Below the pieces are notes generated by a model. It was not told where the DNA came from. It did no database searches and saw only the letters and a program-made list of their open reading frames with translations. Below are positions 3,521-62,735 of a DNA stretch of 64,000 bases, one piece after another (positions within the stretch are counted from its first letter, which is position 1; every line of letters begins with the position of its first letter). Location of the stretch: positions 11,222,001-11,286,000 of the forward strand of contig NC_043011.1 in the NCBI RefSeq assembly GCF_006345805.1, given 5' to 3'. Position numbers and translations under genes: made by a program. The stretch is from Octopus sinensis (lineage: Eukaryota).

Positions 3521-4756
3521 TTTTTGCTGGAAAACGCATACAGACTCAAAGGCTAACTGGTACTATTCTTGAAGAAGATGTTAAAGTAACTGAAGGTTGT
3601 GACTCTAACTTGGAGAAAACTGAGGCTAAATTGTCTGAATCATCTGAGGATAGCATTTCTGTATTTTCGCCAAAATTTGACCTTTTGCTATCATGCCATA
3701 ATCAAGAGAAACCAGAGTCCAATTTAACTGATATTAAAAGGACCAAGTCTTGTGACAATTCACACTTGGTTGACAGAAACTTGTTCCTTAAAACAGCCAA
3801 GAAAGAATCGGCTGTTGCTAAATATGTTGATAATGATGATGATGAATTTATTGTTCCAGATAGCAGTGCTATCACAGGGGTTGAAAAACCAAAGAGCATA
3901 AACTCTCATCAAAACAAAACACATCTGCAAACCCCAAAGACAATATTATCTGACTCGCTTTTACCTTGTGGCCAAGCAAATATTTCTACTGCTTCACTGG
4001 GTCAGCCTAGTATTGGTTGTACACTGGATAATACAATTGAAACGATAAGCCCTCACCAATGTGATATACCCGTAAGTGAATCTCTGAAACATTGCTCTAC
4101 CAATAATGAACAGCCAGAAAGAGATACTAGTCTAACAGAAATTAATAATCGCTTCAACATTTTAGATACTTTCTCAGTTCTTAGCCAGAAGAAAAAAGCA
4201 AATTATTGTCATTAAGACGAAACGAGTCTGTACAGGAATTCCTTCATTCCAATAGTGACTGTTCCAAGTTTGTTGCTTGTAGTAATGACTCTTGTAATGC
4301 AGCAGAGTATGGCAAGATAACATCATCAGAGTTAAAATACAAACCCGTCTTGAATGCCGATGATAAGAACAAAAATGGTAATCCAGTTCAGTATAACCAC
4401 TGTTTATCAAAAGATGTGCTGGAACATCTGCCCAAAGATCAATTGATATCTTGTCAAAGTACGATTGCAGGCATACCAGACCAATACCAAAGCTCACCAC
4501 AAAGTAGTAAACACAAACTAGTCCAGGAATGCTTTCAAAGCCAAATGCCACTTGAACATTCTACGCTTGACAACCCACTTCCAGTCCAGCGCCAATTAGA
4601 TTTCCTCAAAGATACTCCAAAATTATCTGAAAAGAGTCCTCAACAATTGACTGAAAATTCACAGTTGAAGGAAATGAATACACGGACCCCAAAAGACGCT
4701 AATCCTGAAGATTCAAGACCTGTAAAAGAAGGATGTTTATCAAGGGAAGAGAACAT
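3521..4756 (+). pseudogene. TTK: TTK-like outer copy exon E3, large Ser/Thr-rich low-complexity exon with a 1-nt frameshift at about 4203
   Basis: CAG acceptor and GTAAGT donor; near-identical to 8974-10192 except +18 nt in frame and -1 T (stop at 4213-4215). Confidence 0.7.
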
Positions 4757-5569
4757 GTAAGTCTTTGCAAATTTAATTCTTAAACATATTTTCCTTTGGA
4801 GAGAGGGTAGTTTCATGACCTTGGTAGGCATTTCCACACTGGAGAGTTTGATAAAATTGATATTCAGTTGAAATACTGTAGATTGATGCTTGTAGGAAAT
4901 TGCAAGAATAAATTCAGAGGGTTGCAGTGTATAGGAAAATGGCTTGGTAAATTGCAGGATCTGGGAAATAAAATAGAGTAGGATGTATTTTCGATGAGTG
5001 AATCAAATAGGAGAAATCTGCAAATTCAGAGACCATTGTACAAGAGGCTGTAAGAAAAAGAGTTAGTGGTTATAATCTGTTCGTCTTTGCTTGTCAGCAC
5101 TGAATAATCTTTGCTTGTCTTGGATGTTTGTGTGTGGTTCATAGTTGACTTTTGTGTAGGATCAGCTGCTATTCATTATGTTCTGACCCTGAACCAGTAG
5201 TCTAGCTTTTTTGGTACTATTTTAACAATGATATATATATATGTCACAATGATAAATCATCTAAGATTCTTAATATACTCTTCGAGTGGTGGAGGGACAG
5301 GGATGAAGACTAGGTTGTCATGTCTTCATTGAAAGATGTTTCAACTACCAGTTCTTGAAAGTTAAGTACAAATCCCATTACTGGTTAAATTTTTTTAAAA
5401 AGGGTCAGTTTGGTTTGACTTGGTTTATTTTGGCGGAAGGGGCCATATTTCTGGAGCAGATGTTATTCTTATAAGAATGAGGAATGTAATAGATTGGCAT
5501 CCTCTCCATTTAATGAATTTGAAAAATCAGCATTTATCCATACTGGGACCAGCACTTTCAATTTTATAG

Positions 5570-5841
5570 GGATCTTTTCGGTTTGAACGGCAGTTTTTAA
5601 CATAATTTCTAGGTAACTAAACACTTTTAAACTTCGTATACTGGTGGAATGTGTTTATAAAACATCTTTTTCTCTTGGCTTTATTGAGAAAATTCTATAG
5701 TTTGTAAGATATTTGTTGTTTTTTTTTCTTCAATTTCTGCAACTTCAACCAATCACTGACGTCTATTGAGGTAAAAAAAAACATTCTGTGCCGTATGAAT
5801 ATGTCCCTTGTTTAAGAAACAGATTGGGTTTATTTACATTT
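5570..5841 (+). mobile_element. Left half of hAT-like MITE
   Basis: TIR GGATCTTTTCGGTTTGAACGGCAGTTTTT preceded by TTTTATAG (5562-5569); right TIR absent here. Confidence 0.8.
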
Positions 5842-6178
5842 TATTTACGTGCCACCGGCACGGAGGGTCGGCGCGAGCAACGGCCACATTTGGATGGTTC
5901 GCTTATGTGCCACCAGCACTGGTATCACAGCTACAATTTCCATTGATGTTGATCGATTTTGATTTTGATTCTCATAATTACTCTAATAATGTTAAATATT
6001 TAAATGTTAAATATTTAATATAAATTTAAATGAGTTATATTAAAGAAAGACTAGTCACTATTTGTTTTGAGTAAGGTAAAATTTAATGTATCTTGTATTT
6101 CTTTTCATGTATCTTGTTTTGCATGCATGTGGCTATACTTGATTAATGAGTTTCTGTTTTGTTATTGTGATATTTTAG

Positions 6179-6574
6179 GACTGTCTTAAGTGAATCTAAA
6201 CCAAGACAGCTAGCAAAACCTGAAATACCTGTGAAGAAAGACTCGGATACTTCACCTGAAGAATTTATTTGTGGTAGCATTTTGGCACTTTCAGAAAAGT
6301 GGGGCTGCCTGAATCAGCAGGGCCCATTTGCAAGGCGCTTCTCACACATCTCTGATAGACGTGTGTCTAATGTACATACTCCTTTAGATAAATGTTTATC
6401 TAGTACTCAGGGTTCCACAGATCCAAGTTTTCATTCTGTAAATGATCGTCGTTTCTCTACTCAGTTTACTACTCTTGGTTCCTCCCATCTGGGTTCTTAT
6501 AACACACCAGTCTGCCATAAGTCATCATTGTCTGCAGGAAGCTATGAAAATGGCTCTTCTTCAAAGTTCCTCAG
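6179..6574 (+). CDS. TTK: TTK-like inner copy exon E1 (396 nt, phase 2-2)
   Basis: TTTTAG acceptor, GT donor, open frame TVLSESKPRQLAKPEIPVKKDSDTSPEEF...SSKFL; assigned by position and frame, not by homology. Confidence 0.6.
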
Positions 6575-7253
6575 GTTTGTAGTTCCAATCCCTTTTAACC
6601 GTCATTATTTTTGCAATTATTTTTTCTGTGCTAACATGATTTGGACAGGACTTCTTGAGTGGTGCTTTACAACAGATATCCTTTCTATTGCCAGTTCTTG
6701 TGTCTTACAAAATAAAACACAGAAAGAAAAAACAACTTAACTGTTTTATAGGTAAAACTTAACTCACTGATATTCCTCAAATGCTTGCCCATTATTGAGT
6801 ATTGTTTCTTGTACTGATACAATGAAGTTACCAATTTTAAAGTAGCTGACTATATCACTTTCACCATTGTTGCATTTTTTACCTTATCCCCTCCACCTAA
6901 ATGCTAACTGTGCTATATCCACCAGGATCATTTTGGTTAATCCTATTATGTTGAAACTGAATTTCTGAAACTTCATCTCTAATTGTAATTTCCCCACCTA
7001 CCAATAACTTCAAAGGTTTAAAACTGAAAATTAACCATATGAAATTAATCCAGCTGTCTCTGACTCCTAATGAAGAAGGGTTTGAAAAGTTTATGGTTGA
7101 TAGCCATCCTTTTGCAACCATGTAATAATAAAGATAAATGAGAGAAATTTGCGAGCATCCTGTCTTGTGAAATTGTCTTTTTCTCTGATTGGTAACATAG
7201 TACACTAATGATCAACTGTGACTTTGACTTGGAATTGCTCTACTCATCATTAA

Positions 7254-7457
7254 CCCTTTTGATACCAACCTGGCCAAAACTGTAGGACAAATATCTTGTT
7301 TTCAAAAGTATTGAATTAAAATCTTCCACCAAACCTCAGTCACAATTTATGTTCCAAACACTAGCTTAATGATAACTAAGTTATTTTACTAAATTCTTTG
7401 TTATATTTAAAATTAATTGAATGAAACACAGAGCATCTCAAAATAAATACGATAACA
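7254..7457 (+). mobile_element. piggyBac-type MITE, partial
   Basis: TTAA|CCCTTTT start; similar to 54153-54373. Confidence 0.55.
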
Positions 7458-8173
7458 GTGAATGGTACATTGAGGCATTCAAAAGGCTTGGAGATACCAT
7501 TTGGAGGAATAGACTGAATAAGAACCTGAAAATTATTCATGTTCACCATAACAATGGGGTAACAAGAGATGATGAATTATTATTATACGCTAATATATTG
7601 TGGCTGATGTCTTCATTTTAGTTGTTAGAATCACATTTCAGCTGTTGTGTCTTTTGGTCGTTATCAGGTACATGTTATGTGTCATAGCATACTTGTAATT
7701 TTGAACTGAACCCTTTTTTGAATCTACTGGAGTAAATTGTAGTCATTCTGTTGATCAGAATGAAGATATTCTCGTATTAGTTATTCTCCTACTTGTGATG
7801 CTGCTTGCTTTTCTTGTTTCAGCCTCCCTCCTCAGTAAATTACAATACTGTTACTCAAGATTAATCAACATTTGTGTTCACTATCTCGTTGTAACATTAA
7901 GTAATTAGGTTCAAGTTGAACGAGCAAGTGATGTCATAAGTAAAAGAATAACTTATATGAGAATATTCTAAGTATGAACAACAGAGTCAAAAATACCTGT
8001 CCTGGGTTTGATTGGAAATTCGAGACCTTGCAAAAGGCTGTTGAGTGCCCTGGCTAAAACTTTGTGATTCTAACAACCAAGATGAGGACTCTTGCCCTAA
8101 TATTATCAGAAAAGAATGATGTAAGAAATGCCGAAGCAGATAGTGAAACACTTTCAACTTTATTCTGTTATAG

Positions 8174-8280
8174 GATTAAGAAAATGCCACAGAGGGTGAC
8201 CGTCGATGAGGCCAAAAGCTATGACAGCTCTGACGAAGAAGACACCTCTATGAGCAAATTTACTCCAAAATCATCATCAG
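8174..8280 (+). CDS. TTK: TTK-like inner copy exon E2
   Basis: Polypyrimidine-TAG acceptor (phase 2), in-frame ATG at 8184, GT donor (phase 1) in frame with E3. Confidence 0.7.
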
Positions 8281-8973
8281 GTAACATACAAATACCTTGT
8301 CACTTCTTTAGTTTGTTACTTATTTGTTTGATTGTTTAGTAGGTTTGTTGACTGATTGATCAGCTAATAGGGTTGGTCGTTGGTTTCTGCTTTGCTTGAT
8401 TTGTTGACTGGTTAATTCATCCATTTTACTCTTTTACTTGTTTCAGTCATTTGACTGTGGCCATGCTGGAGCAGCGCCTTTTAGTCGAGCAAATCAACCG
8501 CCGGGACTTATTCTTTGTAAGCCTAGAACTTAATCTATCGGTCTCTTTTGCCGAATTGCTAAGTGACAGGGACGTAAACACCCCCAGCATCGGTTGTCAA
8601 GCAATGCTAGGGGGACAAACACAGATACACAAACATACACACACATACATATATACGACGGACTTCTTTCAGTTTCCGTCTACCAAATCCACTCACAAGG
8701 CTTTGGTTGGCCTGAGGCTATAGTAGAAGACACTTGCCCAAGGTGCCACGCAGTGGGACTGAATAATAAAAAAAAAAAAAATTGAAAAACAGCCAGGTGG
8801 AAATTGAATGACTAAGTGTCAACTGAAATGATCATTGTGCTACTAGCCCTGCTGTTTCTTTTTCGAGCAAATTATGAATTCTAAAATTAAATTGGTTTTT
8901 GTAGTCCTTGTTTGTTCTTTTGCATCTTCTTTTCTATGCACATTTAAATGAAATATTTTCCTATTGTCTCAAG

Positions 8974-10192
8974 TTTTTGCTGGAAAACGCATACAGACTC
9001 AAAGGCTAACTGGTACTATTCTTGAAGAAGGTTGTGACTCTAACTTGGAGAAAACTGAGGCTAAATTGTCTGAATCATCTGAGGATAGCATTTCTGTTAT
9101 TTCGCCAAAATTTGACCTTTTGCTATCATGCCATAATCAAGAGAAACCAGATTCCAATTTAACTGATATTAAAAGGACCAAGTCTTGTGACAATTCACAC
9201 TTGGTTGACAGAAACTTGTTCCTTAAAACAGCCAAGAAAGAATCGGCTGTTGCTAAATATGTTGATAATGATGATGATGAATTTATTGTTCCAGATAGCA
9301 GTGCTATCACAGGGGTTGAAAAACCAAAGAGCATAAACTCTCATCAAAACAAAACACATCTGCAAACCCCAAAGACAATATTATCTGACTCGCTTTTACC
9401 TTGTGGCCAAGCAAATATTTCTACTGCTTCACTGGGTCAGCCTAGTATTGGTTGTACACTGGATAATACAATTGAAACGATAAGCCCTCACCAATGTGAT
9501 ATACCCGTAAGTGAATCTCTGAAACATTGCTCTACCAATAATGAACAGCCAGAAGGAGATACTAGTCTAACAGAAATTAATAATCGCTTCAACATTTTAG
9601 ATACTTTCTCAGTTCTTAGCCAGAAGAAAAAAGCAAATTTATTGTCATTAAGACGAAACGAGTCTGTACAGGAATTCCTTCATTCCAATAGTGACTGTTC
9701 CAAGTTTGTTGCTTGTAGTAATGACTCTTGTAATGCAGCAGAGTATGGCAAGATAACATCATCAGAGTTAAAATACAAACCCGTCTTGAATGCCGATGAT
9801 AAGAACAAAAATGGTAATCCAGTTCAGTATAACCACTGTTTATCAAAAGATGTGCTGGAACATCTGCCCAAAGATCAATTGATATCTTGTCAAAGTACGA
9901 TTGCAGGCATACCAGACCAATACCAAAGCTCACCACAAAGTAGTAAACACAAACTAGTCCAGGAATGCTTTCAAAGCCAAATGCCACTTGAACATTCTAC
10001 GCTTGACAACCCACTTCCAGTCCAGCGCCAATTAGATTTCCTCAAAGATACTCCAAAATTATCTGAAAAGAGTCCTCAACAATTGACTGAAAATTCACAG
10101 TTGAAGGAAATGAATACACGGACCCCAAAAGACGCTAATCCTGAAGATTCAAGACCTGTAAAAGAAGGATGTTTATCAAGGGAAGAGAACAT
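8974..10192 (+). CDS. TTK: TTK-like inner copy exon E3 (intact)
   Basis: Inside the 410-aa ORF 8964-10196; CAG acceptor, GTAAGT donor, phase 1 to 2. Confidence 0.75.
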
Positions 10193-10490
10193 GTAAGTCT
10201 TTGCAAATTTAAATTGCAGGATCTGGGAAATAAAATAGAGTAGGATGTATTTTCAGAGACCATTGTACAAGAGGCTGTAAGAAAAAAAGTTAGTGGTTAT
10301 AATCTGTTCGTCTTTGCTTGTCTTGGATGTTTGTGTGTGGTTCACAGTTGACTTTTGTGTAGGATCAGCTGCTATTCATAATGTTCTGACCCTGAACCAG
10401 TAGTCTAGCTTTTTTGGTACTATTTTAACAATGATATATATATGTCAAGTGATATATATATGTCATATATATGTGACATATATATATGTC

Positions 10491-10685
10491 GGCGGCACGT
10501 AAAAAGCACCGACTACACTCACGGAGTGGTTGGCATTAGGAAGGGCATCCAGCTGTAGAAACACTGCCAGATCAGACTGGGCCTGGTGCAGCCTTCAGGC
10601 TTCCCAGACCCCAGTTGAACCGTCCAACCCATGCTAGCATGGAAAGCGGACGTTAAACAACGATGACGATAATGATGATGATGAT
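10491..10685 (+). mobile_element. RTE 3'UTR-derived repeat with (GAT)n tail
   Basis: Homologous to 60290-60479; paralogous to 46005-46175. Confidence 0.75.
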
Positions 10686-10783
10686 TTAAAAATCGCACTG
10701 TTATGTAGCAGATTGTAGCTTTTATTTATTGATGACTTATTTGGAGGAGCTTGTTTCTTTTATTGTGTTGTTATGTCTTTCAG

Positions 10784-10865
10784 TCCTGCTAGTATCGATG
10801 CAGTCATCACTCCGCAGGTAAAGGATACTGCTCCCTCTGCAACGAATCTTGTACAGTTAGAGAAG
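10784..10865 (+). CDS. TTK: TTK-like inner copy exon E4
   Basis: TTTCAG/GTAGGT, 82 nt, phase 2 to 0; identical copy at 46272-46353. Confidence 0.7.
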
Positions 10866-10978
10866 GTAGGTACTTTGGTTTTGTTATCAGCCACACCTCC
10901 TCTGGCATTCTGTGTGTTTGTAATCTGTGATATATCCATCCACTTGATATAGTAACATAACCTATTTTAATATTTCAG

Positions 10979-11053
10979 AAACTACGTTCTTTAATGGTCA
11001 ACAATAAAGTGTACACAGTTGTAAAGAAGGTTGGCAAAGGTGGAAGCAGTACA
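10979..11053 (+). CDS. TTK: TTK inner copy exon E5, kinase subdomain I
   Basis: KLRSLMVNNKVYTVVKKVGKGGSST matches the Mps1 GxGGSS loop; GTAAGT donor. Confidence 0.9.
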
Positions 11054-11223
11054 GTAAGTACTTATTTATTTTATCTATGTGTGCTCAGGTGTGGCTTTAT
11101 GGTTAAGAAGCTTGTTTCCTAACTGTGTGGTCTGAGGCTTAGCCTCATTGTACAGCACTTTATACAAGTGTCTTATAATATAGTGTGTGCATGTGCTCTT
11201 CTCTTCGCATCATATGATGATTG

Positions 11224-11370
11224 GGATCTTTCCGGTTTGAATGGCAGTTTTTTAACATAATTTCCAGGTAACTAAAAAATTTTAAACTTCGTATACTGGT
11301 AGAATGTGTTTATAAAACATCTTTTTCTCTTGGCTTTATTGAGAAAATGTTATAGTTTGTAAGATATTTC
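11224..11370 (+). mobile_element. Truncated hAT-like MITE, paralogue of 46712-47127
   Basis: Same left TIR and same GATGATTG flank. Confidence 0.75.
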
Positions 11371-11865
11371 CTGTCATCAACCGATGCTGGTGTGTTTACG
11401 TCCCTGTCACTTAGTTGTTCGGCAAAAGAGACCGATAGAATAAGTACTAGGCTTACACAGAATAAGTCCTGGGGTCGATTTGCTCGACTAAAGGCAGTGC
11501 TTCAGCATGGCCACAATCAAATGACTGAAACAAATAAAAGAGTAAAGAGTATATGTCTGGTCCATCTGAGTATTCGCTTTTTATCTACTGTAATTACAAT
11601 AACCCTTACTTTTCTGAACCTGCTAAAAGTGCTGACAGTTTGCAAGTTATAAGAATAAGTCACATACTAAACAATATGGATTTTATTCCTACATTCCAGA
11701 GTTAAATTTACTCTGAAACTTTCTCAACTTAAAATTGATAATCAGGGCCTTGTTGATGAAATCATAAAAGAAAACATTTTTTTTGTCGGAATTTAAAAGG
11801 AGAAAAGTCAACTGAATTTATATCAGTTTTTGTAATATTCATCTTATCCATCTCAACCCCCACAG

Positions 11866-12020
11866 GTGTATGAAGTATTTGACCAGAGTGGAAATAGAAT
11901 GGCAGTTAAGTGCATTACTTTTGGTGACGCTCACGCAGTTACCATAGGGAGCTACAAAAAGGAGGTGATCCTTCTGAAGCAGTTGCAGTACAGTGACCGA
12001 ATCATCAAACTCTATGATTA
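11866..12020 (+). CDS. TTK: TTK inner copy exon E6, subdomains II-IV
   Basis: VYEVFDQSGNRMAVKCITFGDAHAVTIGSYKKEVILLKQLQYSDRIIKLYD matches Mps1 (SY..E..L..L..SD.II.LYD). Confidence 0.9.
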
Positions 12021-12093
12021 GTAAGTGATATATTCTACCGCTGCTGTGTCTTGATTGCGTAGTACATTGATATAAATGATATAACACACAAAG

Positions 12094-12325
12094 ACGGCAA
12101 GCTGGCAGAAATGTTAGCACGCCGGGCGAAATGCTTGGCAGCATTTCGTCTGCAGTTACGTTCTGAGTTCAAATTCCGCCGAGGTCGATTTTGCCTTTCA
12201 TCCTTTCGGGGTCGATAAATTAAGTACCAGTTACGCACTGGGGTCGATGTAATCGACTTAATCCGTTTGTCTGTCCTTGTTTGTCCCCTCTATGTTTAGC
12301 CCCTTGTGTGGGTAATAAAGAAACA
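12094..12325 (+). mobile_element. tRNA-derived SINE with Nin-like domain (octopus OR1-like)
   Basis: GGCAAGCTGGCAGAA head, GAGTTCAAATTCC B-box, GCCTTTCATCCTTTCGGGGTCGATAAATTAAGTACCAG; also at 49431-49665 (+) and 51345-51570 (-). Confidence 0.7.
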
Positions 12326-12499
12326 TATATTGTTGAGTGATATATTAAATCTATAGATACTATATTAATTATATAGTTAGTTTATATAATGGGTGTGTGT
12401 ATATTTGAACCATTTCATATTTTTGATTCTAGTATTTATGGCTTGTACTAGCATTGTGTATATTAATTAACATTAAGGTTTTTAGTATTAATTGCTTAA

Positions 12500-14102
12500 C
12501 CCTTTCGTTACTATATTTCTGACCAAAATACACCCCTTATGTGTTTCAATTAATTTCTAACGTAATCATAAATTTAGTCTGGTTTCATTAAACAACTATA
12601 ACTTTTTTATTTATCAATATATTAATCTGATTTTTGGAAGATAATTTAATGAAATATTCTCAACCAATTCTATACGTAATGGGGTGGTGGTGGGGGACAT
12701 TTTTTGGGTAAGCAGGGCACAAACTGTCTTTCTTAGGGGAGTGGTCAAAAGAATCAGTGATAAAGTAAATAAATGAATAAATAGAATAATTGAATAGAGT
12801 TTTAGGTAAATTAGAAGACTATCGCTTTTAGTCAGTTTGTTGTTGTTGTTATTAAGTGGAGGGAAGAAGTAGATATGTATACATAAAAGAACATATAAAT
12901 AAATATACATACAAACCCAGATACATACACATGCGAATATCCATACACATACATATACATATGCCCATGTATATACATACAGAAACAGTTTTTAAATTTT
13001 CACTCCATTCAGGTGCCAATTCGTTTTCTTTATCGCTGTTGGAGCTCTCGAATTCACTGTTTTCACTTTCAGAAAATGAAACATCAGATTCATTATCAAA
13101 TACCATGTGCTTTTTTTTTTCAGTCATAGAGTTAGATTTATGAAGGTCTTCAGTAGAAAATCCTTCGAATTCTGACTCGCTGCTTGATATAATGAAATTC
13201 GTATCCATTTTTTGTCAGAATTTTTGTCACAAAGTGACTTTAATTGCAGGTAGATACAGGTAAATTCAACAAAATATAAAATTATTAAAATTTTGTTCAA
13301 ACATTGCTATAGAAAATGGGTTATTAGCTATACAACAAAATTGGGTATACAACAAAATTTTACGATAGAATTTGTTATTCTGGGTAACTTTCTGATACCC
13401 ATAATAATATTCACGGCAAAATAGTCTTCACAAACTATCGTTTCTTTCGCTTTGTTTAAGTTTAGCGTAGCGGTTCGTTTCCGCCGTAATGATTTCAAAT
13501 AGGCTCATTCGAAAAAGTAAAAAGAAATAGTCTAAGGCTTTACTCTTCTGGGAAAGTCTGTGGCTTGGTCCAGTTTCTTCAGAAAAATCACCAAAAGAAA
13601 CAGTTTTTAAATTTTCACTCCATTCAGGTGCCAATTCGTTTTCTTTATCGCTGTTGGAGCTCTCGAATTCACTGTTTTCGCTTTCGGAAAATGAAACATC
13701 AGATTCATTATCAAATACCATGTGCTTTTTTTTTTCAGTCATAGAGTTAGATTTATGAAGGTCTTCAGTAGAAAATCCTTCGAATTCTGACTCGCTGCTT
13801 GATATAATGAAATTCGTATCCATTTTTTGTCAGAATTACAAATTTTGAAAACACAAGAGGAACAAATTTCGGAAAAAAATCTCTCAAAATTCAGGGAATT
13901 AAAATTACACTTCGATTATTGTACAAAACTGTAGTTGAACTGTTTACGAAGTATAATACGTGTTTTCACGAATGTAGTAAAGAGATTTGCTCTGATATTC
14001 TCATTTAAATATGAATACGTAAATTCGGGCGGCTTTGGGCGGTTTGGTCACATTAACCAAAATTTTTTTCGGACGGCTTTGGGCGGTTTGGTAACGAAAG
14101 GG
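12500..14102 (-). mobile_element. Internally deleted piggyBac element
   Basis: TIR CCCTTTCGTTAC...GTAACGAAAGGG, TTAA on both sides, empty TTAA at 49835-49838; acidic N-terminus plus YFFLLF...ITAETNRYA transposase motif (13428-13823). Confidence 0.9.
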
Positions 14103-14221
14103 TTAATGGGTATTAGACTCTATTTGGATGTTTATTAAATAAATATATTAATTAATAATTGGATTTAATGTATATAGTTTAAAGTGTTGTATTTAGTTTT
14201 CATTTAATGTATATTTTGTAT

Positions 14222-14260
<39 letters not shown>

Positions 14261-14274
14261 TTTATAGAAGAAGG

Positions 14275-14325
14275 AGCTTCTACAGGACTAGAACTGTTTC
14301 ATTCAAATGAAATCATCAGGAAGCT
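14275..14325 (-). ncRNA. Type I hammerhead ribozyme motif, family H1
   Basis: AGCTTC-CTGATGA-T TTC ATTT GAA T-GAAA-CAG TTCTAGTC CTG-TA-GAAGCT; three helices, GUA triplet, U.U at 10.1/11.1. Confidence 0.75.
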
Positions 14326-14714
14326 TGCTGTCAAAATAAGATCTGGCATTTATACATTTAGGCAGATGTAATGGGGTGGTGGTGGGGGACATTTTTTGGG
14401 TAAGCAGGGCACAAACTGTCTTTCTTAGGGGAGTGGTCAAAAGAATCAGTGATAAAGTAAATAAATAAATGAATAAATAGAATAATTGAATAGAGTTTTA
14501 GGTAAATTAGAAGACTATCGCTTTTAGTCAGTTTGTTGTTGTTGTTATTAAGTGGAGGGAAGAAGTAGATTATGTATACATAAAAGAACATATAAAATAA
14601 ATATACATACAAACCCAGATACATACACATGCGAATATCCATACACATACATATACATATGCCCATGTATATACATACAGACACACACATACATACATAT
14701 AAATACACTAGCAC

Positions 14715-14763
<49 letters not shown>

Positions 14764-14979
14764 CACATACACACACATACATATATATGCATATATATAC
14801 ATACACATATATATATATACAAATACACATACACATACATGCAAACACACAAACACACGCACACCTATATCTACACATATATAAATATACACACCCATAC
14901 ACACACACACACACATATATATATATTTTTCTTCTCTCCTCATCTTCCTCCCTTATTTTATTTTTATTTTCCCTTGACC

Positions 14980-15130
14980 GTCTTCCAGATCATAAAAGGT
15001 ATAATATATGACCTACCTACCCACCGACACACATTTAGTGGCGCTAGAGTAGACAAACGCCAAAAGTTCCTATAATTCCCCAGGGTTCCAGCAGGCCTAA
15101 TGGAATCCATCTACCGCTCCCTTCTCCCTT
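14980..15130 (+). mobile_element. Decayed Penelope endonuclease C-terminus
   Basis: DKRQKFL..GSSRPNGI resembles the PLE terminal LG.L.PNGIN motif; inverted copy at about 29790-29945. Confidence 0.45.
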
Positions 15131-15275
15131 CCTTTCTATCTCTTTACCCACGGATACAAATGCAAACACTCACACACACTCACACGCACACTCATACACA
15201 TACACAAACACACATGTTCTCTCACTCATTACCTCCTCATCCACTTATACATATGTATATATCTCTCTCTACTTG

Positions 15276-15321
<46 letters not shown>

Positions 15322-15783
15322 CACATACATATACACACACAAGTACTCATATGCATACATACATAAATGTACCCACTTTCACATAAACGTATACATAACT
15401 ATGTACACACAAACACACATATATAAACGTACTTCAGTACACATAAACACACATAAATATCTGCCCGCATATATAAACGCATATGCTCATATAAAAACAT
15501 ATGTGCATATAAACATACATACGCATATATACGCATCCATATGCTTATAAATACATATATGCACACATGCATGCATACATGTGCACATAAATGCATACAT
15601 GCATATACATACCTACACACATACACATACATATATACACATACAAAAATCTACAAGTCCTATATATATATATATGTATATATATACATATACATATACG
15701 TATATACCTGCACACACATACACATATATACTTACACCCATACACCAATATATACATATCTACATACACATACATATACATAT

Positions 15784-15840
<57 letters not shown>

Positions 15841-15971
15841 AGCACATACACATACGCATATCTATACACATACACACACACACACATATATATATACATA
15901 TATAAATATATAAAAAAGTCTACAAGTCCATACATGTACACACATACATATACATACACATACATATATAC

Positions 15972-16017
<46 letters not shown>

Positions 16018-16266
16018 TATACACATATATACACATACAAAAATCTACAAGTCCATATATATATATATACATATACATACACACATATATACACACAAAT
16101 ACACATATGCATACATAAATATATACATATACATGCATACACACACACACATATATATATTATATATATACATATTTAAAAAAGTCTACAAGTCCATACA
16201 TATACGCACATACATATACATACACACATATATACACATATATATATATACCTATATATATATATG

Positions 16267-16590
16267 TTATATTTCGGAATGGTCATATTGCCAGTTTAGC
16301 CAATAAAAACACACGCACTATATATTTGGTGTTATTTTGCTTCAGTGATACTTATTTTTTACATTAATCTTAATCTTATTTCGGCCAAAGTTCTTTCGTC
16401 ACACTCCTGTGACCGCATCAGTGGTCCTTTGTTTTTTTCTCACTTATTTGTGTCTCTCCTTACTAACCGTCAGCCATTTTGTATTTCTATTGCATGTCTT
16501 CATTTGCGCATGCTTATATCTCTATGTGCATCTATGTTTATTTAGTGTGTGGCTAAACTGGCAATATGACCATTCCGAAATATAACAATA
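16267..16590. mobile_element. Short element with ~35-bp terminal inverted repeats in (TA)n; second copy 17946-18270
   Basis: TTATATTTCGGAATGGTCATATTGCCAGTTTAGCCA ... TGGCTAAACTGGCAATATGACCATTCCGAAATATAA. Confidence 0.7.
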
Positions 16591-16675
16591 TCTGTTTCAA
16601 CACACGACTTCACATAAAAAATGTTGCACAACAAATATATATATATATATCTATATATATTTATTATATAGAAGG

Positions 16676-16726
16676 AGCTTCTACAGGACTAGAACTGTTT
16701 CATTCAAGAGAAATCTTCAGGAAGCT
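16676..16726 (-). ncRNA. Hammerhead motif H1 (variant CTGAAGA, loop II TCTT)
   Basis: Differs from 14275 only at N7 and loop II; all helices kept. Confidence 0.75.
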
Positions 16727-17656
16727 AGTTAACAAGAATTGTATTGGCATTTATACATTTAGGCAGGTGGGGGACTTTTTTGGGGGTAGGCATAGCACAA
16801 AATATCATACTTGGGGGAGTGGTCAAGGAGTCAGTGTTAAATTAGATGGAAGAATAAATAAAAAAAAAAAAAAATAAAAAATAAAAAAAAAAAATAAAAT
16901 AAAAAAACCTATATATAAAGAAAAAAAACCCTATATATAAAAAAAGGGGGGATAGAGTTTTAGGTAAATAAGGAGATTCTCACTCATACCTATGCACACA
17001 TGTATACATACATACACACACAAGTACTCATATGCATACATACATAAATGTACCACTTTCACATAAACGTATACATAACTATGTACACACAAACACACAT
17101 ATATAAACGTACTTCAGTACACATAAACACACATAAATATCTGCCCGCATATATAAACGCATATGCTCATATAAAAACATATGTGCATATAAACATACAT
17201 ACGCATATATACGCATCCATATGCTTATAAATACATATATGCACACATGCATGCATACATGTGCACATAAATGCATACATGCATATACATACCTACACAC
17301 ATACACATACATATATACACATACAAAAATCTACAAGTCCATATATATATATATATGTATATATATACATATACATATACGTATATACCTGCACACACAT
17401 ACACATATATACTTACACCCATACACCAATATATACATATCTACATACACATACATATACATATATATATGTATATATATATATATATATAATATATATA
17501 TATATAATATATATATATATATAAGCACATACACATACGCATATCTATACACATACACACACACACACATATATATATACATATATAAATATATAAAAAA
17601 GTCTACAAGTCCATACATGTACACACATACATATACATACACATACATATATACCC

Positions 17657-17708
<52 letters not shown>

Positions 17709-18356
17709 CTTACACCCATACACAAGTATACAAGCATATATACATATATATATACACAAATACACATATATACACACAAATACACATATGCATACATAAA
17801 TATATACATATACATGCATACACACACACACATATATATATATATACATATTTAAAAAAGTCTACAAGTCCATACATATACGCACATACATATACATACA
17901 CACATATATACACATATATATATATACCTATATATATATATATTGTTATATTTCGGAATGGTCATATTGCCAGTTTAGCCAATAAAAACACACGCACTAT
18001 ATATTTGGTGTTATTTTGCTTCAGTGATACTTATTTTTTACATTAATCTTAATCTTATTTCGGCCAAAGTTCTTTCGTCACACTCCTGTGACCGCATCAG
18101 TGGTCCTTTGTTTTTTTCTCACTTATTTGTGTCTCTCCTTACTAACCGTCAGCCATTTTGTATTTCTATTGCATGTCTTCATTTGCGCATGCTTATATCT
18201 CTATGTGCATCTATGTTTATTTAGTGTGTGGCTAAACTGGCAATATGACCATTCCGAAATATAACAATATCTGTTTCAACACACGACTTCACATAAAAAA
18301 TGTTGCACAACAAATATATATATATATATATCTATATATATTTATTATATAGAAGG

Positions 18357-18407
18357 AGCTTCTACAGGACTAGAACTGTTTCATTCAAGAGAAATCTTCA
18401 GGAAGCT
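18357..18407 (-). ncRNA. Hammerhead motif H1
   Basis: Identical to 16676-16726. Confidence 0.75.
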
Positions 18408-18787
18408 AGTTAACAAGAATTGTATTGGCATTTATACATTTAGGCAGGTGGGGGACTTTTTTGGGGGTAGGCATAGCACAAAATATCATACTTGGGGGAG
18501 TGGTCAAGGAGTCAGTGTTAAATTAGATGGAAGAATAAATAAAAAAAAAAAAAAATAAAAAATAAAAAAAAAAAAATAAAATAAAAAAACCTATATATAA
18601 AGAAAAAAAAACCCTATATATAAAAAAAGGGGGGATAGAGTTTTAGGTAAATAAGGAGATTCTCACTCATACCTATGCACACATGTATACATACATACAC
18701 ACACATGCAAACATATATACACATACATACACACATACATACACACACATATATATACATATATATACACTTACACATACACATGCT

Positions 18788-18826
<39 letters not shown>

Positions 18827-18852
18827 CATACATACATACACACACATGTATG

Positions 18853-18891
<39 letters not shown>

Positions 18892-19301
18892 AGCATGTGT
18901 ATGTGTAAGTGTATATATATGTATATATATGTGTGTGTATGTATGTGTGTATGTATGTGTATATATGTTTGCATGTGTGTGTATGTATGTATACATGTGT
19001 GCATAGGTATAAGTGAGAATCTCCTTATTTACCTAAAACTCTATCCCCCCTTTTTTTATATATAGGTTTTTTTTTGTTTTTTTTTTATATATAGGTTTTT
19101 TATTTTATTTTTTTATTTATTTTTTTTTAATTTTTTTATTTTTTTATTTTTTTATTTATTCTTCTATCTAATTTAACACTGACTCCTTGACCACTCCCCC
19201 AAGTATGATATTTTGTGCTATGCCTACCCCCAAAAAAGTCCCCCACCAACACCCCGTTAAACCTGCCTAAATGTATAAATGCCAATACAATCTTGTTAAC
19301 T

Positions 19302-19352
19302 AGCTTCCTGAAGATTTCTCTTGAATGAAACAGTTCTAGTCCTGTAGAAGCT
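19302..19352 (+). ncRNA. Hammerhead motif H1 (sense to the TTK pre-mRNA)
   Basis: AGCTTCCTGAAGATTTCTCTTGAATGAAACAGTTCTAGTCCTGTAGAAGCT. Confidence 0.75.
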
Positions 19353-19459
19353 CCTTCTATATAATAAATTAATTTTACTCTGCTATGTATTGAGTACCTT
19401 ATTACTGTGGTTAACCCCGAATCAACCCGGGACCTACATATATCTATATATATATATAT

Positions 19460-20613
19460 TGTTGTGGTTCGGCCGGCACAGTATTTCTGACCTACTTTGT
19501 TGAGAGGTGAGACGGAAGGTCTGGAATAAAAAGCTACAGCCCTTTGTTTACTGGAAGAGTATGGCTTTTGGAGGGACCTTTGGCCTTGTGCCGGTCGATT
19601 AGGGGTCAGAGAGATGTGAGGGCCGAGGAAGATAGAGTAAGGAAGAATCCAGTGACAGTGAAGAAGAGGAAGAAGAAAGTAGTGAGAAAGACAGAGTAAG
19701 GGATCTGAGAGCTGTCATGAGAGAATGACAGTGACAGCGTCGATATAGATAGGCAGATAGGGCTGAGAGCAGATAGAGAGGATATTAGTGTGCAGAGACA
19801 GATTGAGGGTAGTGATAGAGGACAGTCGGTATTCGGTCGTCAAAGCGAGCAGTCGGTTTTTGGGAGTCGAGGCGAGCGGTTGGAATTTAAGCAGTCGGCG
19901 GTCTTGGAGTATTGGGACAGAGAGAGATATATACAGAGGAATAGGCGGCGGTGGAGATGGGGTACAATATGAGGCGTTGGCTAATGTAAGGTACGTGAAT
20001 TGTGCATTGATATGTGAAGAAAAAGAAGGACAAGGAATCGAAATGAACAGTGAAAAGAAATGAGACAGTAAAAAGGAATTTAAAGAACAATGTGAATTGT
20101 GTAAGGACATTGTGTACAGTGTTGTGATTTGAACATTGTATAATGAACAATGAACTGTTAGGCCTGTAATGTCCTTTGAACTGTATATGACTTGTTGATG
20201 TGTTTTGAAATAGAACTGTGTCTTCGGATGTGTACCTTTGAAATGCTGATGTATTGACCTTGATGTGTTGTTACCGGACGGTTATATTGTTACTTGCATG
20301 TTTAAATGCTTTGATCTGTGGTATACCTGTATGATGTATTGAGTTGTCACGTGCATGTCTCTTTTAAATGTATCTGAAATGTATTTGATGTTGTAACAAT
20401 TGATTGTCATAAACTAGTGTTAAATGTAAGCCAGTTGTGCCTTGCCTCTTTGTGTCTCTCTCGGTTGCCTCTGTATCTCCTCTGTGCTGCTGTTGTGTTG
20501 TTGTATCTCTCTCTCCTCTCCAAGTTTCCGTAGCGAAAATATTCGCTGCATCGAACGGGCCTTGTGTGAGGGATTCCGTAACAGTTCGAATCGGAGGTCC
20601 CCACCTCGTAACA
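19460..20613 (-). mobile_element. Probable solo LTR (Gypsy-like ends)
   Basis: TGTTACG...ACAACA on - strand, ATAT on both sides, 1154 bp, non-coding. Confidence 0.55.
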
Positions 20614-56530: not shown

Positions 56531-59500
56531 CCCTTTCGTTACTATATTTCTGACCAAAATACACCCCTTATGTGTTTCAATTAATTTCTAACATAATCAT
56601 AAATTTAGTCTGGTTTCATTAAACAACTATAACTTTTTTTTTTATCAATATATTAATGTGATTTTTGGAAGATAATTTAATGAAATGTTCTCAACCAATT
56701 CTATACTATAATTTTTGTCACAAAGTGACTCTAATTGCAGGTAGATACAGGTAAATTCAACAAAATATAAAATTATTAAAATTTTGTTCAAACATCGCTA
56801 TAGAAAATGGGTTATTAGCTATACAACAAAATTGGGTATACAACAAAATTTTACGATAGAATTTGTTATTCTGGGTAACTTTCTGATACCCATAATAATA
56901 TTTATGGCAAAATAGTCTTAATTTCATTTAAGGTTGTAGGAAACCACTAACTATCCTTTCTTTCGCTTTGTTTACATTTAGCGTAACGGTTCGTTTCCGC
57001 CGTAATGATTTCAAATAGGCTCATTCGAAAAAGTAAAAAGAAAGTAATTGAGGTAATTGAGGTAATCAGAGTATGTGACAGAATACTTAAGATTAGATTA
57101 GTGCTTCATCATAGTTTAGCAACCATTATATCAGCCTATGCTCCTCAGTCGGGGCTACCCGATGGACAGAAAGACCGATTCTATGACACTCTACTGCAGA
57201 CTACCTCGTTGACGAACGACAGAGACCTTATCTTTGTGGCTGGTGACTTCAATGGCTGGTGACTTACACTAATAAATTATACGACATGCTGGGGGCTTCC
57301 ATGGCGTACATGGAGGCTATGGCTATGGCTCCCGCAACGAGGAGGGAACCAGGCTGCTGGAGTTCTGCGATGCAAATAATCTTATGATTTGCAACACTAA
57401 CTTCAGGAAACCTACCAGCCACCTAGTCACTTACCAATCGGGCCAACATACCAGCCAAATTGACTACATCCTTACAAGGCAAAGGGAGAGATGGCTGCTT
57501 ATAAATGCCAAAACCTTCCCAGGTGAAGAATGTACCCCACAACATAGACTGGTAGTTAGTGACTTTAGGATCAGGACTAGGAGGACAACCAGAAGACGAC
57601 AAATATGGAGAAGAAGGATCTGGAAGCTTAAAGATCCTGCAAATGGACAGAGATTTAGGGACATATTACTTGAAGCCTCTGACGAAGTAGAAGGGGATAG
57701 AGCATCACAGGGGGTAGAAGACAGCTGGACGTTTCTAAGGGACAACCTGCTGAGAGCCTCTGACCAGATCTGTGGCTGGTGCAAAGTCCCCTCTCGACCT
57801 AGAATAACGTGGTGGTGGAACAATATTGTAGACAGGGCTATTAGAGAAAAGAGACAGGCTTGGAAGGTCTGGAAAAATGGGGGTAGCAGGGGATTGTATC
57901 AGACTGCCAAAAGAGAAGCTAGGAGACAGGTTTATTTAGCCAGAGGGGAAGCAGATAAGAAAAAATTTGCCAATGTTCTGCGCCGTGAGGACCAAAGACT
58001 GGAGGTGTTTCGTGTTGCAAGACAGTGTGTGAGAGAGAATCGTGATGTGGTAGGAGAGAAGTGTGTTCGCATGGAAGATGGTTCACTTGCGCTAAATGAG
58101 GATGCAAAGAGAGAGGTTTGGAGATGCCACTATGAAAGGTTGCTGAATGAAGAAAATGAATGGGATAAAGAGAGTCTGCCGAATGTTGACCCAACAGAGG
58201 GACCAGCTATCCGAGTTGATAGTTCCGTGGTAGCTAAGGCAATTAGAAGCATGAAGACAGGGAAAGCCCCAGGCCCATCAGGAATCACTGCAGAGATGCT
58301 CAAAATGTCTGGTAGTGTCGGCTATAGCCTAGTCACCCGTATAGTTAATCAGGTGATACACAAGGGGTCATACCCAATGACTGGTGTAGCAGTATAATAG
58401 TCAACTGCTACAAAGGTAAGGTGATGCCCTAGATACAAATAACTACAGAGGTATCAAGCTGTTGGACCAGGTGATGAAGGTTACGGAGAGGGTCATAGCC
58501 CAACTAATTAGAGAGAGAGTTAGTTTAGATGAGATGCAGTTTGGGTTTGTGCCAGGGAAAAGTACTACTGATGCTATATTCCTGGTAAGGCAGCTGCAGG
58601 AGAAATACCTAGCCAAAGATAAGCCCCTGTACCTGGCTTTTGTTGACATGGAGAAAGCCTTCGACAGGGTCCCCCGATCCCTTATCTGGTGGGCAATGAG
58701 GAAACTAGGGATAGATGAATGGTTAGTGAGAGCTGTGCGGGCCATGTACAGGGACGCCGCTAGTAGGGTGAGGGTTGGAAATGTGTACAGTGAAGAATTC
58801 CGGGTAGAGGTAGGAGTCCACCAAGGCTCAGTACACAGCCCCCTCCTATTTATCATAGTCCTCCAGGCAATAACGGAGGAATTCAAGACAGGATGCCCTT
58901 GGGAGCTCCTCTATGCTGATGACCTTGCTCTAATTGCTGAGTCGCTATCAGAACTGGAGGAGAAGTTTCAGGTGTGGAAACAAGGATTAGAATCGAAGGG
59001 CCTCAGAGTCAATCTAGCTAAAACCAAAGTCGTAATCAGTAGGAAGGTAGACAAATCACAAACACCTTCAGGTAGATGGCCCTGCTCGATCTGTAGAAAA
59101 GGTGTAGGTAGAAACTCTATAAGATGCACCAAGTGTAAGCTATGGACACATAAGAGATGCAGCAATGTCAAAGAAAGGCTAACTAGGAAGATGGTTTTTG
59201 TATGTGGCAGATGCTCAGGAACAATAAACACTGAAAATGCTCTGAGACCAACTTCCGTCACTTTCCAGGGAGAAAAACTAGAAATAGTTGATAGTTTCCG
59301 TTACCTAGGTGACCAAGTCAGCAGCGGGGGCGGGTGTGCTGAAAGTGTAACTGCTAGAATAAGAATAGCTTGGGCAAAGTTCAGAGATCTCTTACCTCTG
59401 CTGGTGACAAAAGGCCTCTCGCACAGAGTGAAAGGCAGACTGTATGATGCGTGTGTACGAACAGCCATGCTACATGGCAGTGAAACATGGGCCGTGACTG

Positions 59501-61037
59501 CTGAGGATATGCGTAAGCTCGCTAGAAATGAAGCCAGTATGCTCCGATGGATGTGTAATGCCGGTACTCACACTCGGCAGAGTGTAAGTACCTTGAGAGA
59601 AAAGCTGGACCTAAGAAGCATCAGTTGTGGTGTGCAAGAGAGACGTTTGCGCTGGTATGGTCATGTGTCGAGAATGGATGAAGATAGTTGTGTGAAAAAG
59701 TGCCACACCCTAGCGGTTGAGGGAACCTGTGGAAGAGGCAGACCCAGGAAAACCTGGGACGAGGTGGTGAAGCACGACCTTCGAACTTTAGGTCTCACTG
59801 AGGAAATGACTCGAGACCGAGACCTCTGGAAGTGTGCTGTGCGCGAGAAGACCCGGCAGGACAAGTGAGTCCATAACCCGTGGCCTTCTACATGGGATGG
59901 AGCCAGCCTACGTATGCATACCTTCCCTTCTTGGGACACAAAACTCTACTTGTGAAGACGTGATGAGGCAAGTGAGGATCAGAATCGAAATCGATCAATG
60001 GAAATTGCGGATGTGCTACCAGTGCCGGTGGCATGTCAAAACTCTGCTTGTGAAGACCCGTTGAGGCAAGTGACGATCAGAATCGAAATCGATCAATGGA
60101 AATCGATCAATGGAAATTGCAGATGTGTTACCAGTGCCGGTGGCATGTAAGAGAACTTTCCGTTTCGCGACCGTTGCCAGCACCGCCCCTTTCGTGTCCG
60201 TTGCCAGCCTCGCCTGGCCCTCGTGCCGGTGGCACATAAAAAGCACCATCCGTTCGTGGCCGTTTGCCAGCTCTGTCTGGCACCAGTGCGGGTGGCACGT
60301 AAAAAGCACCCACTACACTCACGGAGTGGTTGGCGTTAGGAAGGGCATCCAGCCGTAGAAACACTGCCAGATTTGACTGGGCCTGATGAAGCCTTCTGGC
60401 TTCACAGACCCCAGTAGAACCGTCCAACCCATGCTAGCATGGAAAACGGACGCTAAACGATGATGATGATGATGATGATGAAATAGTCTAAGGCTTTACT
60501 CTCCTGGGAAAGTTTGTGGCTTGGTCCAGTTTCTTCAGAAAAATCACCGAAAGAAACAGTTTTTAAATTTTCACTACATTCAGGTGCCAATTCATTTTCT
60601 TTATCGCTGTCGGAGCTCTCGGATTCACTGTTTTCACTTTCGGAAAATGAAACATCAGATTCATTATCAAATACCACGTGCTTTTTTTTTTCTTTCATAG
60701 AGTTAGATTTATCAAGGTCTTCAGTAGAAAATCCTTCGAATTCTGATTCGCTGCTTGATATAATGAAATTCATATCCATTTTTTGTCAGAATTACAAATT
60801 TTGAAAACACAATAGGAACAAATTTCGGAAAAAAATCTCCCAAAATTCACGGAATTAAAGTTACACTTCGATCGTAGTACAAAACTGTAGATGAACTGTT
60901 TACGAAGTATAATCACTTGTTTTCACAAATGTACTAAAGAGATTTGCTCTGATATTCTCATTTAAATATGAATAGGTAAATACGGGCATTAACCAAAACT
61001 TTTTTGGGCGGCTTTGGACGGTTTGGTAACGAAAGGG
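56531..61037 (-). mobile_element. piggyBac element (same family as 12500-14102) interrupted by an RTE LINE
   Basis: Same TIRs, TTAA on both sides, empty TTAA at 37962-37965; transposase N-terminus at 60453-60779. Confidence 0.9.
57044..60479 (+). mobile_element. 5'-truncated RTE-clade LINE: APE endonuclease, RT, PHD-like finger, long 3'UTR, (GAT)n tail; frameshifted
   Basis: VAGDFNG, SQIDYIL, QFGFVPGKSTTDAIF, LLYADDL; ORFs 57384-58397 and 58462-59868; GAAA duplicated at the junctions. Confidence 0.9.
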
Positions 61038-61087
61038 TTAAACCTCTGTCTTAATCTAGCTTACATATTATTTTTATCTGATTCCAG

Positions 61088-61264
61088 ATAGGCTTGAAGA
61101 GTGACATTTGGTCTCTTGGTTGTATTCTCTATTTTATGGTCTACGGTAAAACTCCATTCCAAGAGATTAGAAACACAACAGAAAAACTGATAGCAATAAG
61201 AAGTGATAAGTTCAAGATCAAATTTGCTGATGTCAGAAATAAAGAGCTATTGGATACAATGAAG
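61088..61264 (+). CDS. TTK: TTK outer copy exon E9
   Basis: Same translation as 38012-38188. Confidence 0.95.
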
Positions 61265-62653
61265 GTACGTTTCAATTGTTTGTATGAAATAGTTCAAATT
61301 GGTGGTTGATGTTTGTGTGGAATTAGGTGATCTACCTACACTCAGATGGCTGGTGTTTGTGTGGGTTTTTGATGAAATATTCACACTCTGGAAACAAGAA
61401 CATGTATAATTACATGGGATTAATCCAATCTGTGATCTATGTATGATTAGATGCAACGGTGTACAACTAGTGGCTGGTATGTGTGTTATTAGATGGAATA
61501 GTCTGCATACTGGTAATTGATGGCTTTGTGTATGAGTAGATGAAATACTCCACATTCTGGTTCGTACTGTTTACTAACAAAATAGTGCCAAAAGTGGGGA
61601 TGTATTCTACACCTGTATACAGGTGCCAGACGAGGCTGGCAAAAGGTCACGATCGGATGGTGTCTTGTACGTGCCACCGGCACGGTGGCCATACGATGCT
61701 GGCAACGGCCACGATTGGATGGTGCTTTGTACGTGCCACCAGCACAGTGGCCAGACGAGGCTGGCAATGGCCATGATCGGATGGTGCTTTTTATGTGCCA
61801 CCGGCACGGAGGCCAGTCGGGGCTGCGCTGGCAACGGCCACATTTGGATGGTTCACTTATGTGCCACCGGCACTGGTATCACAACTACAATTTCCATTGA
61901 TTTTGATCGATTTTGATTTCGATTTCACTTGCCTTAACAGGTCTTCGCAAGTAGAGTTTATCTAAATGTATATTTAGATAAACTGATCCACCTCTGATGG
62001 AGAGTGCTTGTATATAATATTAGATGGAATCATTCACACCCTAGTAGCTAACAGATGTATGGATTAGCCTACACTTTGGTGGCTATTGCGTGAGATCAAA
62101 TGGAATAGTTCTCATTGAGGTAGGGGTATGTATTAAGATACAATGATCCACATTCTAGTGGATGTATATCAGTAGATGAAATGGTCATCATTGGTGTCTG
62201 CTGCGTGCATGGATGTAAAAAGAACTAATCTACTACTGTTTATCTATCTCTTGAACTCTCTATTTTCAAGCAAGCCTCTTTCCTTCCTTTTTATTTCCTT
62301 CACTTTTTATTTACGTTCACCCTTTTACATACACATCTCACATATTCACACACATTAACACATACATTAACACATATTGAAGAAAAGTTCCAACAAGATT
62401 ATGTGGATACCAGTATATAAGTTTTGAGATCAAATCCACTCCAAATGTTTAATTGTAATTATATGCAAGGCATCAAGCTGTGGTCCATGTAGCCATGGAG
62501 AGTAGGCATTAGATTACCTCAGAATGTTACATGCAACAAACGAGTGTTATCCCTCTAATTTATGTTTTGTACCCTTGAGATATATTTATGATGTTACACA
62601 CATGCATGCACACATCTACACTTTATATATATCTTACTCTGTTTCTTGTGCAG

Positions 62654-62735
62654 TGCTGTCTGTGCAGAGATCCCAAAGAAAGACCGTCTATTGAAGAAAT
62701 TCTGCAGCATCCATATTTGAGAGAAGTGACTATAG
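62654..62735 (+). CDS. TTK: TTK outer copy exon E10
   Basis: CCLCRDPKERPSIEEILQHPYLREVTI. Confidence 0.95.

Follow-up and report, generated by a model that had tools for sequence, protein, structure and literature searches.

Can a single Mps1/TTK gene carry two complete kinase domains in one chain? The question is raised by a stretch of the Octopus sinensis genome at the Mps1/TTK locus (GCA_006345805.1, CM016873.1:11,222,001-11,286,000; hereafter the window, 64,000 nucleotides, G+C 36%, 0 N), in whose six-frame translation each kinase motif of Mps1/TTK is present in two copies. An earlier sequence-only reading had described an inner copy nested within an outer one and had proposed that the two could be spliced into a tandem double kinase. 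We found two full kinase exon sets on one strand and in one transcription unit, E4-E10 (10784-40078) and E4'-E10' (46272-62735), where the prime denotes the outer copy, and the two can be joined without loss of frame.

Two kinase exon sets in one transcription unit

Judged by its sequence, the gene in the window is the orthologue of TTK: phmmer against PDB gave human TTK at E=1.9e-77, with Nek7 as the next family (1e-28). Octopods supplied the nearest proteins. One was O. bimaculoides XP_052830151.1, with 88% identity to the query; the other was from Argonauta hians, whose locus (in BAAFZT010000045.1) holds a single-copy canonical gene of 26 kb. The canonical exon order was taken from these two, and exons were placed by tblastn with reference proteins together with direct reading of the splice sites. 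The locus of XP_036365368.1, identical to the window over 8238 bp, gave 54.6 kb more upstream sequence; positions in it carry a minus sign and are counted from window position 1. In the canonical gene, five N-terminal exons are followed by E0, E1, E2, E3, E4-E10 and the tail exons, with intron phases, from intron -1 to intron 10, of 1, 2, 2, 1, 2, 0, 0, 2, 1, 0, 0 and 1. Every exon that we mapped lies on the + strand with AG/GT borders (Table 1). Neither an N-terminal exon nor a C-terminal tail exon was found inside the window; homologous N-terminal exons lie 6-45 kb upstream of it, and the true tail exons are beyond it, after E10' only. Pfam gave no TPR or Mad3_BUB1_I match in the octopus protein. 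The O. bimaculoides gene model (LOC106875756, GCA_001194135.2) spans ~230 kb, as against the 26 kb in Argonauta, which means either very large introns or a locus that is likewise complex.

Taken in genomic order, E1 to E10, the exon at 41124-41223 and E4' to E10' form a stop-free chain of 1228 codons. The frame is kept across the duplication because introns 0 and 3 are both of phase 2 and introns -1 and 10 both of phase 1, with E10 (phase 1) leading into E0 (phases 1/2) and E0 into E4' (phase 2); the phase shared by introns 0 and 3 settles two junctions at once. Such continuity is no more than chance allows, about 1/9 (~1/3 x 1/3), if phases 0, 1 and 2 are assumed to be equally frequent, as in the Mps1/TTK gene here. 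The splice letters quoted in the sequence-only reading were all present (at 4756, 6178, 6574, 8174, 10192, 10784, 41223 and 46272), and its proposal that the exon sets are spliceable into one chain with two intact kinase domains was borne out, as was the nested picture. It had also held all junctions to be of phase 2, which is incorrect: E10 to E0 is 1/1, and E2 to E3 is phase 1. The inner copy does begin, as it stated, at an acceptor with no first exon, none being found between 4777 and 6178.

The exon that it had named inner E11 has the genuine donor that it described (GG/GTAAGT at 41223, the slash marking the exon border) but is not a last exon. It is E0, because it aligns directly before E1 (…ATSNG/TVLSESKP…), corresponding to residues ~186-218 of O. 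bimaculoides XP_052830151.1, and has its own acceptor. The stop at 41225, proposed as the end of a protein with a duplicated N-terminus and the inner kinase, is thus reached only by intron read-through past the normal donor of E0 and is not a natural C-terminus.

In the alignment to human TTK, both kinase copies keep the AVK Lys, the alphaC Glu, the catalytic-loop Asp, DFG and [11 protein letters not shown]. Thr residues stand at the human T676 and T686 positions in both (phmmer alignment), so that the conservation claimed earlier for VK, the alphaC Glu and the two Thr equivalents was confirmed. Between the two kinase coding sequences, 15 of 930 nt are different, which changes 7 codons synonymously and 7 non-synonymously. 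Against O. bimaculoides, each copy has 23 differences in 310 residues, and eight derived residues are common to both; therefore, the copies diverged from each other later than their lineage did from O. bimaculoides, and neither shows signs of degeneration. One of these eight residues gives the catalytic loop HLD (35808-35816 and 55926-55934), which reads HSD in O. bimaculoides, Argonauta and human. Compared with canonical Mps1/TTK (human TTK, O. bimaculoides LOC106875756, Argonauta), each octopus copy thus has the same exon order and kinase domain with the conserved activation-loop Thr, whereas the single kinase exon set of the canonical gene is replaced in the O. sinensis assembly by E1-E10 twice and E0 twice in one transcription unit.

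The hinge differs between the copies: the outer one has Cys (LECGN, E7', 52394-52396), and the inner one has Phe (E7, 34571-34573), as do O. bimaculoides and Argonauta; the aligned PDB chain 5ljj has Tyr there. We take this position to be human TTK Cys604, where substitutions confer inhibitor resistance.

A gene has been called in the same assembly that starts at window position 4545, extends beyond the end of the XP_036365368.1 locus as retrieved, and has a 1378-aa product with two Pkinase matches. There is an ATG at 4545, and 4545-4756 joined to E1 to E10, E0 and E4' to E10' gives 1299 stop-free codons; with the 79-residue tail of O. bimaculoides this makes 1378, the annotated length. By its start and its length, the annotated model fits the double-kinase chain. 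Such a model is not expression evidence, as it can be made ab initio. It is without the whole N-terminal localisation region, and the N-terminal exons are annotated apart, as a 304-aa "TTK-like" stub (XP_036365368.1) that ends at the E1' frameshift described below.

The insert in intron 3 and the divergence of the copies

A single break (5247 / ~45595) interrupts outer intron 3. It lies at a boundary of (TA)n and short interspersed element (SINE) sequence and contains an insert of ~40 kb. The insert consists of a filler (f1), a colinear copy of E1-E10 and a second filler (f2; 40236-45594, 5.4 kb) with a 303-bp E0 patch inside. At the edges of the colinear copy, 5844 corresponds to -2367 and 40235 to 62892. 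Alignment of the fillers to outer introns -1, 0 and 10 gave scores equal to those of shuffled controls, and the E0 patch scored 287. The homology of this patch to the E0' region stops at 303 bp, and its flanks are unrelated to the flanks of E0'. None of the three joins falls inside a repeat common to both sides that might give a false overlap.

The exon blocks differ in how far, and in what way, the two copies have diverged. In the E4-E10 pair (S3 and S3'), introns show ~1.7% divergence (81 substitutions in 4.9 kb), four small indels of mixed directions and at least eight indels the size of transposable elements. In the E1-E3 pair (S2 and S2'), we counted one substitution in 2.3 kb (-2200..159, 0.04%), four in E3 and ~20 in a stretch derived from transposable elements. 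Over -2200..4776, compared with 6001-10212, there are nine indels of 1-2 bp; all nine shorten the upstream copy, and eight lie in homopolymers. The E0 patch differs from E0' by 2.6%. An 18-bp segment at 3574 in E3' is also present in O. bimaculoides, and the three amino-acid differences between E3 and E3' are all non-synonymous.

Two of the short deletions break the frame of the upstream block. In E3', a 1-bp deletion at 4203 (TT vs TTT) leads to a stop at 4213-4215, and E1' has another at -1777. As assembled, the gene's own start codon therefore has no continuous open reading frame (ORF), with stops after both frameshifts, and reading from the outer N-terminus yields none of the three products proposed earlier (the outer copy alone, a duplicated N-terminus with the inner kinase, or two kinase domains in one chain). 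Because both frameshifts belong to the one-directional class of homopolymer deletions, they are probably errors of an unpolished long-read consensus and not decay. The E3' frameshift had been considered as proof of a dead chain and was downgraded on the direction of the indels (nine of nine shorter upstream, eight homopolymeric). The pattern points to a poorly polished E1'-E3' stretch in the public O. sinensis assembly.

Table 1. Exons, blocks and inserted elements of the O. sinensis Mps1/TTK locus (window coordinates unless stated; exon borders marked by a slash).
Feature	Coordinates	Strand	Remarks
Five N-terminal exons	-44642, -43617, -25120, -15205, -6288	+	homologous to O. bimaculoides and Argonauta exons
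E0'	-3231..-3132	+	
E1'	-2022..-1625	+	frameshifted as assembled
Outer E2''	-36..72	+	cut by window start (1..72 inside); tblastn; donor CATCAG/GTAACA
Outer big exon E3'	3521-4756	+	donor AT/GTAAGT at 4756
Outer intron 3, 5' part	4757..5247	+	corresponds to inner 10193-10447; ends in short (TA)n tract
Filler f1	5248..5843		307 nt unique in the 118 kb examined, and a ~290-nt dispersed repeat
Inner colinear copy	5844..40235	+	begins 335 nt before E1, ends 157 nt past E10
Inner E1	6179-6574	+	acceptor TTTTAG/GACTGT (6178), phase 2; donor CTCAG/, phase 2
Inner E2	8174-8280	+	starts /GATTAA; donor phase 1
Inner E3	8974-10192	+	intact, 406 codons; ends AT/, donor phase 2
Inner E4	10784-10865	+	starts /TCCTGC
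Inner E5	10979-11053	+	G-loop
Inner E6	11866-12020	+	AVK Lys
Insertion private to inner intron 6	12500..33286 (20.8 kb)		outer copy has 134 bp there
Inner E7	34535-34701	+	
Inner E8	35797-35990	+	[11 protein letters not shown], activation loop
Inner E9	38012-38188	+	
Inner E10	39997-40078	+	donor phase 1
Filler f2a	40236..41065		without homology to outer intron -1 or intron 10
303-bp E0 patch	41066..41368	+	97.4% identical to upstream E0' region; holds exon E0
E0 copy (formerly inner E11)	41124-41223	+	acceptor phase 1; donor GG/GTAAGT, phase 2
Filler f2b	41369..45594		unique stretches, SINE and other repeat copies
Outer intron 3, 3' part	45595..46271	+	SINE with six 63-nt tandem units (45595-46173), then unique; corresponds to inner 10487-10783
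Outer E4'	46272-46353	+	starts /TCCTGC
Outer E5'	46467-46541	+	
Outer E6'	49205-49359	+	
Outer E7'	52358-52524	+	
Outer E8'	55915-56108	+	
LINE-type retrotransposon	57384..59868	+	two long ORFs, RVT_1 E=2.5e-28; in 4.5-kb insertion private to outer intron 8
Outer E9'	61088-61264	+	
Outer E10'	62654-62735	+	
Outer intron 10 start	62736..62892	+	157 nt, 100% identical to 40079-40235; then (TA)n tract and SINE at breakpoint
Split annotation (coordinates of XP_036365368.1 locus)	stub 10001-52881; 1378-aa model 59188 onward		

Real duplication or assembly artefact

We favour, at a probability of roughly one half, a real and complex germline duplication within the gene, possibly on one haplotype only. 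Intron 3 would have received f1, a colinear copy of E1-E10 that starts in intron 0 and takes in the first 157 nt of intron 10, and f2 with the E0 patch. The insert could have been produced by replication template-switching of the fork stalling and template switching/microhomology-mediated break-induced replication type (FoSTeS/MMBIR). The insert resembles events of this kind in its clustered breakpoints, the short patch copied from nearby (the 303-bp E0), the filler at the joins and the breakpoints in (TA)n/SINE sequence. Alternatively, two successive tandem duplications may have reused a fragile (TA)n site; the insert is equally describable as adjacent tandem duplications of E1-E3 and E4-E10 that share this site. 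Sequential splicing would take in all exons because all have canonical sites, and joining nearest neighbours would yield an mRNA in which the middle region is duplicated and two kinase domains, both catalytically competent, are connected through a linker of 33 residues from E0. Provided that the homopolymer sites are errors, the ORF would then extend from the first N-terminal exon across both kinase sets as far as the tail.

Two other origins were considered and rejected. Re-integration of a circle, with circular permutation, was raised by the position of E0 after E10; it was dropped because the E0 copy extends over no more than 303 bp, with unrelated DNA around it, and the E1-E10 copy begins 335 nt before E1. 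Reciprocal unequal crossing-over between SINEs of introns 0 and 3 would not fit a left join without a hybrid SINE, and the SINE fragment at 5844 is oriented opposite to the one at 45595-46173.

A possible, though less probable, explanation is that each haplotype has one canonical Mps1 and that, in this PacBio/Hi-C assembly, an E1-E10 and E0 piece of the second haplotype was inserted where intron 3 of the first haplotype was broken, which would make both the intragenic duplication and the double-kinase gene model false. Several observations speak for this and weigh against a real duplication. In unphased long-read assemblies of heterozygous genomes, a sizeable proportion of the genes is affected by false duplications, and the false heterotype duplications and exon gains described there likewise comprise partial copies beside the original, allele-like divergence and split or inflated annotation (Ko et al. 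2022, PMC9516828); both this base rate and these diagnostic features count here. Heterozygosity in the sister species O. vulgaris is 1.22%, and the mosaic of divergence between the copies (0.04% over 2.3 kb of S2, ~1.7% in S3, 2.6% in the E0 patch) is of a kind common between alleles. E0-E10 each occur exactly two times, the number expected from two haplotypes, and the inner exons and E0, when re-ordered, make a perfect canonical protein colinear with that of O. bimaculoides. The nine one-directional deletions suggest much weaker read support for the upstream E1-E3 copy, as expected of a thinly supported and unpolished path. In addition, (TA)n or SINE sequence borders every join, the RefSeq annotation of the locus is divided between the stub and the 1378-aa model, and the nearest assembly gap (100 N at -9902..-9803) lies ~9.8 kb upstream of the window, outside the duplicated blocks. 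It would also be biologically awkward for an essential checkpoint gene to have an Mps1 of ~2,100 residues as its sole product, and a search of the protein collection with the E10-E0-E4' junction peptide found no protein that spans it. Conversely, the gap between copies that is a hallmark of false heterotype duplications is absent here, the duplicated pairs being continuous with 0 N. An artefact would require three seamless joins and a mis-ordered E0 piece, with no join spanned by a repeat common to both sides, and the fillers, with their unique sequence, would need to be chimeric. The patch of E0 is hard to explain for alleles, which in a simple two-haplotype artefact should stay homologous past 303 bp; its flanks are unlike those of E0' and do not look allelic. 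Allelic sequence or a mis-join through repeats does not easily account for these features, which speak for a real layout. We also count in its favour the 15 nucleotide differences and the eight or more indels of transposable-element size between the kinase sets, the stop-free chain and the annotated model with two Pkinase matches.

Should the duplication be real, a sub-case, which we consider unlikely, is that an Mps1 with two active kinase domains is expressed and that this covalent dimer favours activation-loop trans-autophosphorylation. The stop-free chain with canonical splice sites, the catalytic and activation-loop residues kept in both domains, the similar distance of each copy from O. 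bimaculoides without signs of degeneration, and the annotated model with two kinase matches all agree with it. Mps1 is activated by trans-autophosphorylation, for which induced dimerisation is sufficient (PMC6119859), and EGFR kinase-domain duplications (EGFR-KDD) have been described as intramolecular dimers with constitutive activity (PMC7812209). This sub-case hinges on the duplication itself, the upstream exons are frameshifted as assembled, the annotated model is without the N-terminal localisation region, and a constitutively primed checkpoint kinase might harm. Besides the negative junction-peptide search, no genuine double-kinase Mps1 was found among the best 150 of ~1,200 Mps1-like cluster representatives (E<=1e-30), assessed by lengths and by Pfam on the eight longest. 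One candidate, Auxenochlorella protothecoides XP_011402375.1 ("mps1"), was rejected: its C-lobe segments are repeated two to three times with 100% identity, most likely an artefact of annotation or assembly. Least probable, in our view, is a real duplication in which E1'-E3' is a decaying block of pseudo-exons, whose genuine frameshifts would leave transcripts to be destroyed or would allow a single kinase through skipping only; the allele might then be a heterozygous null. Both frameshifts do fall in the same redundant block, and all amino-acid differences between E3 and E3' are non-synonymous. However, neutral decay produces more substitutions than indels, as in S3/S3', whereas the small indels of this block all run in one direction, eight of the nine in homopolymers, with almost no substitutions.

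If the favoured reading is true and splicing proceeds as modelled, the locus would be a germline counterpart of oncogenic kinase-domain duplications. EGFR-KDD, an in-frame tandem duplication of exons 18-25 that is somatic and found in cancer, is likewise a frame-keeping intragenic duplication giving two kinase domains per chain. It is, however, a simple tandem with proven transcripts, whereas the O. sinensis layout is a feature of a germline assembly, known from sequence and a gene model, in which a non-kinase region is duplicated too, an exon patch is the linker and filler DNA is present. By analogy, a tethered Mps1 could prime itself without the kinetochore clustering normally needed for trans-autophosphorylation, and the locus would show, as an experiment of nature, how checkpoint signalling copes with a built-in dimer of a kinase whose activation appears to depend on dimerisation. 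If the layout is an artefact, the public O. sinensis reference includes a broken Mps1 locus, with a stub of 304 aa and a false two-kinase protein of 1378 aa, by which gene-family counts, orthology tables and expression analyses could be misled; this reference also serves as a scaffold for the annotation of O. vulgaris. The one-sided homopolymer errors flag a poorly polished stretch. Nothing specific to octopus TTK, or to octopus assemblies with false duplications, was found in the literature.

Repeats and mobile elements at the locus

A SINE family of ~275 nt, with tandem units of 62-63 nt, occurs at 45595-46173, 10487-10673 and 62893-63200 and in at least nine further copies. The breakpoints in introns 3 and 10 coincide exactly with copies that follow a (TA)n tract. 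ARAGORN found no tRNA in support of a tRNA origin of this SINE. A different repeat, of 94 nt (40972-41065), abuts the left edge of the E0 patch; it is 95.7% identical to -6895..-6802 and has two further upstream copies. Its position could hint at capture or transduction of an exon fragment by a mobile element.

Each copy of the gene has also acquired large insertions of its own, the 20.8-kb block in inner intron 6 and the insertion in outer intron 8 being among the larger indels of the E4-E10 pair. The former contains strongly GC-skewed microsatellite arrays with a periodicity of 8-12 nt, nested inverted repeats (for example 14255-14731 vs 32601-32139, and 24208-24966 vs 26661-25903) and one ORF (29987-30871) with a weak GIY-YIG match, and may be a cluster of Penelope-like elements. 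The long interspersed element (LINE) in outer intron 8 has long open frames, which suggests that it is young.

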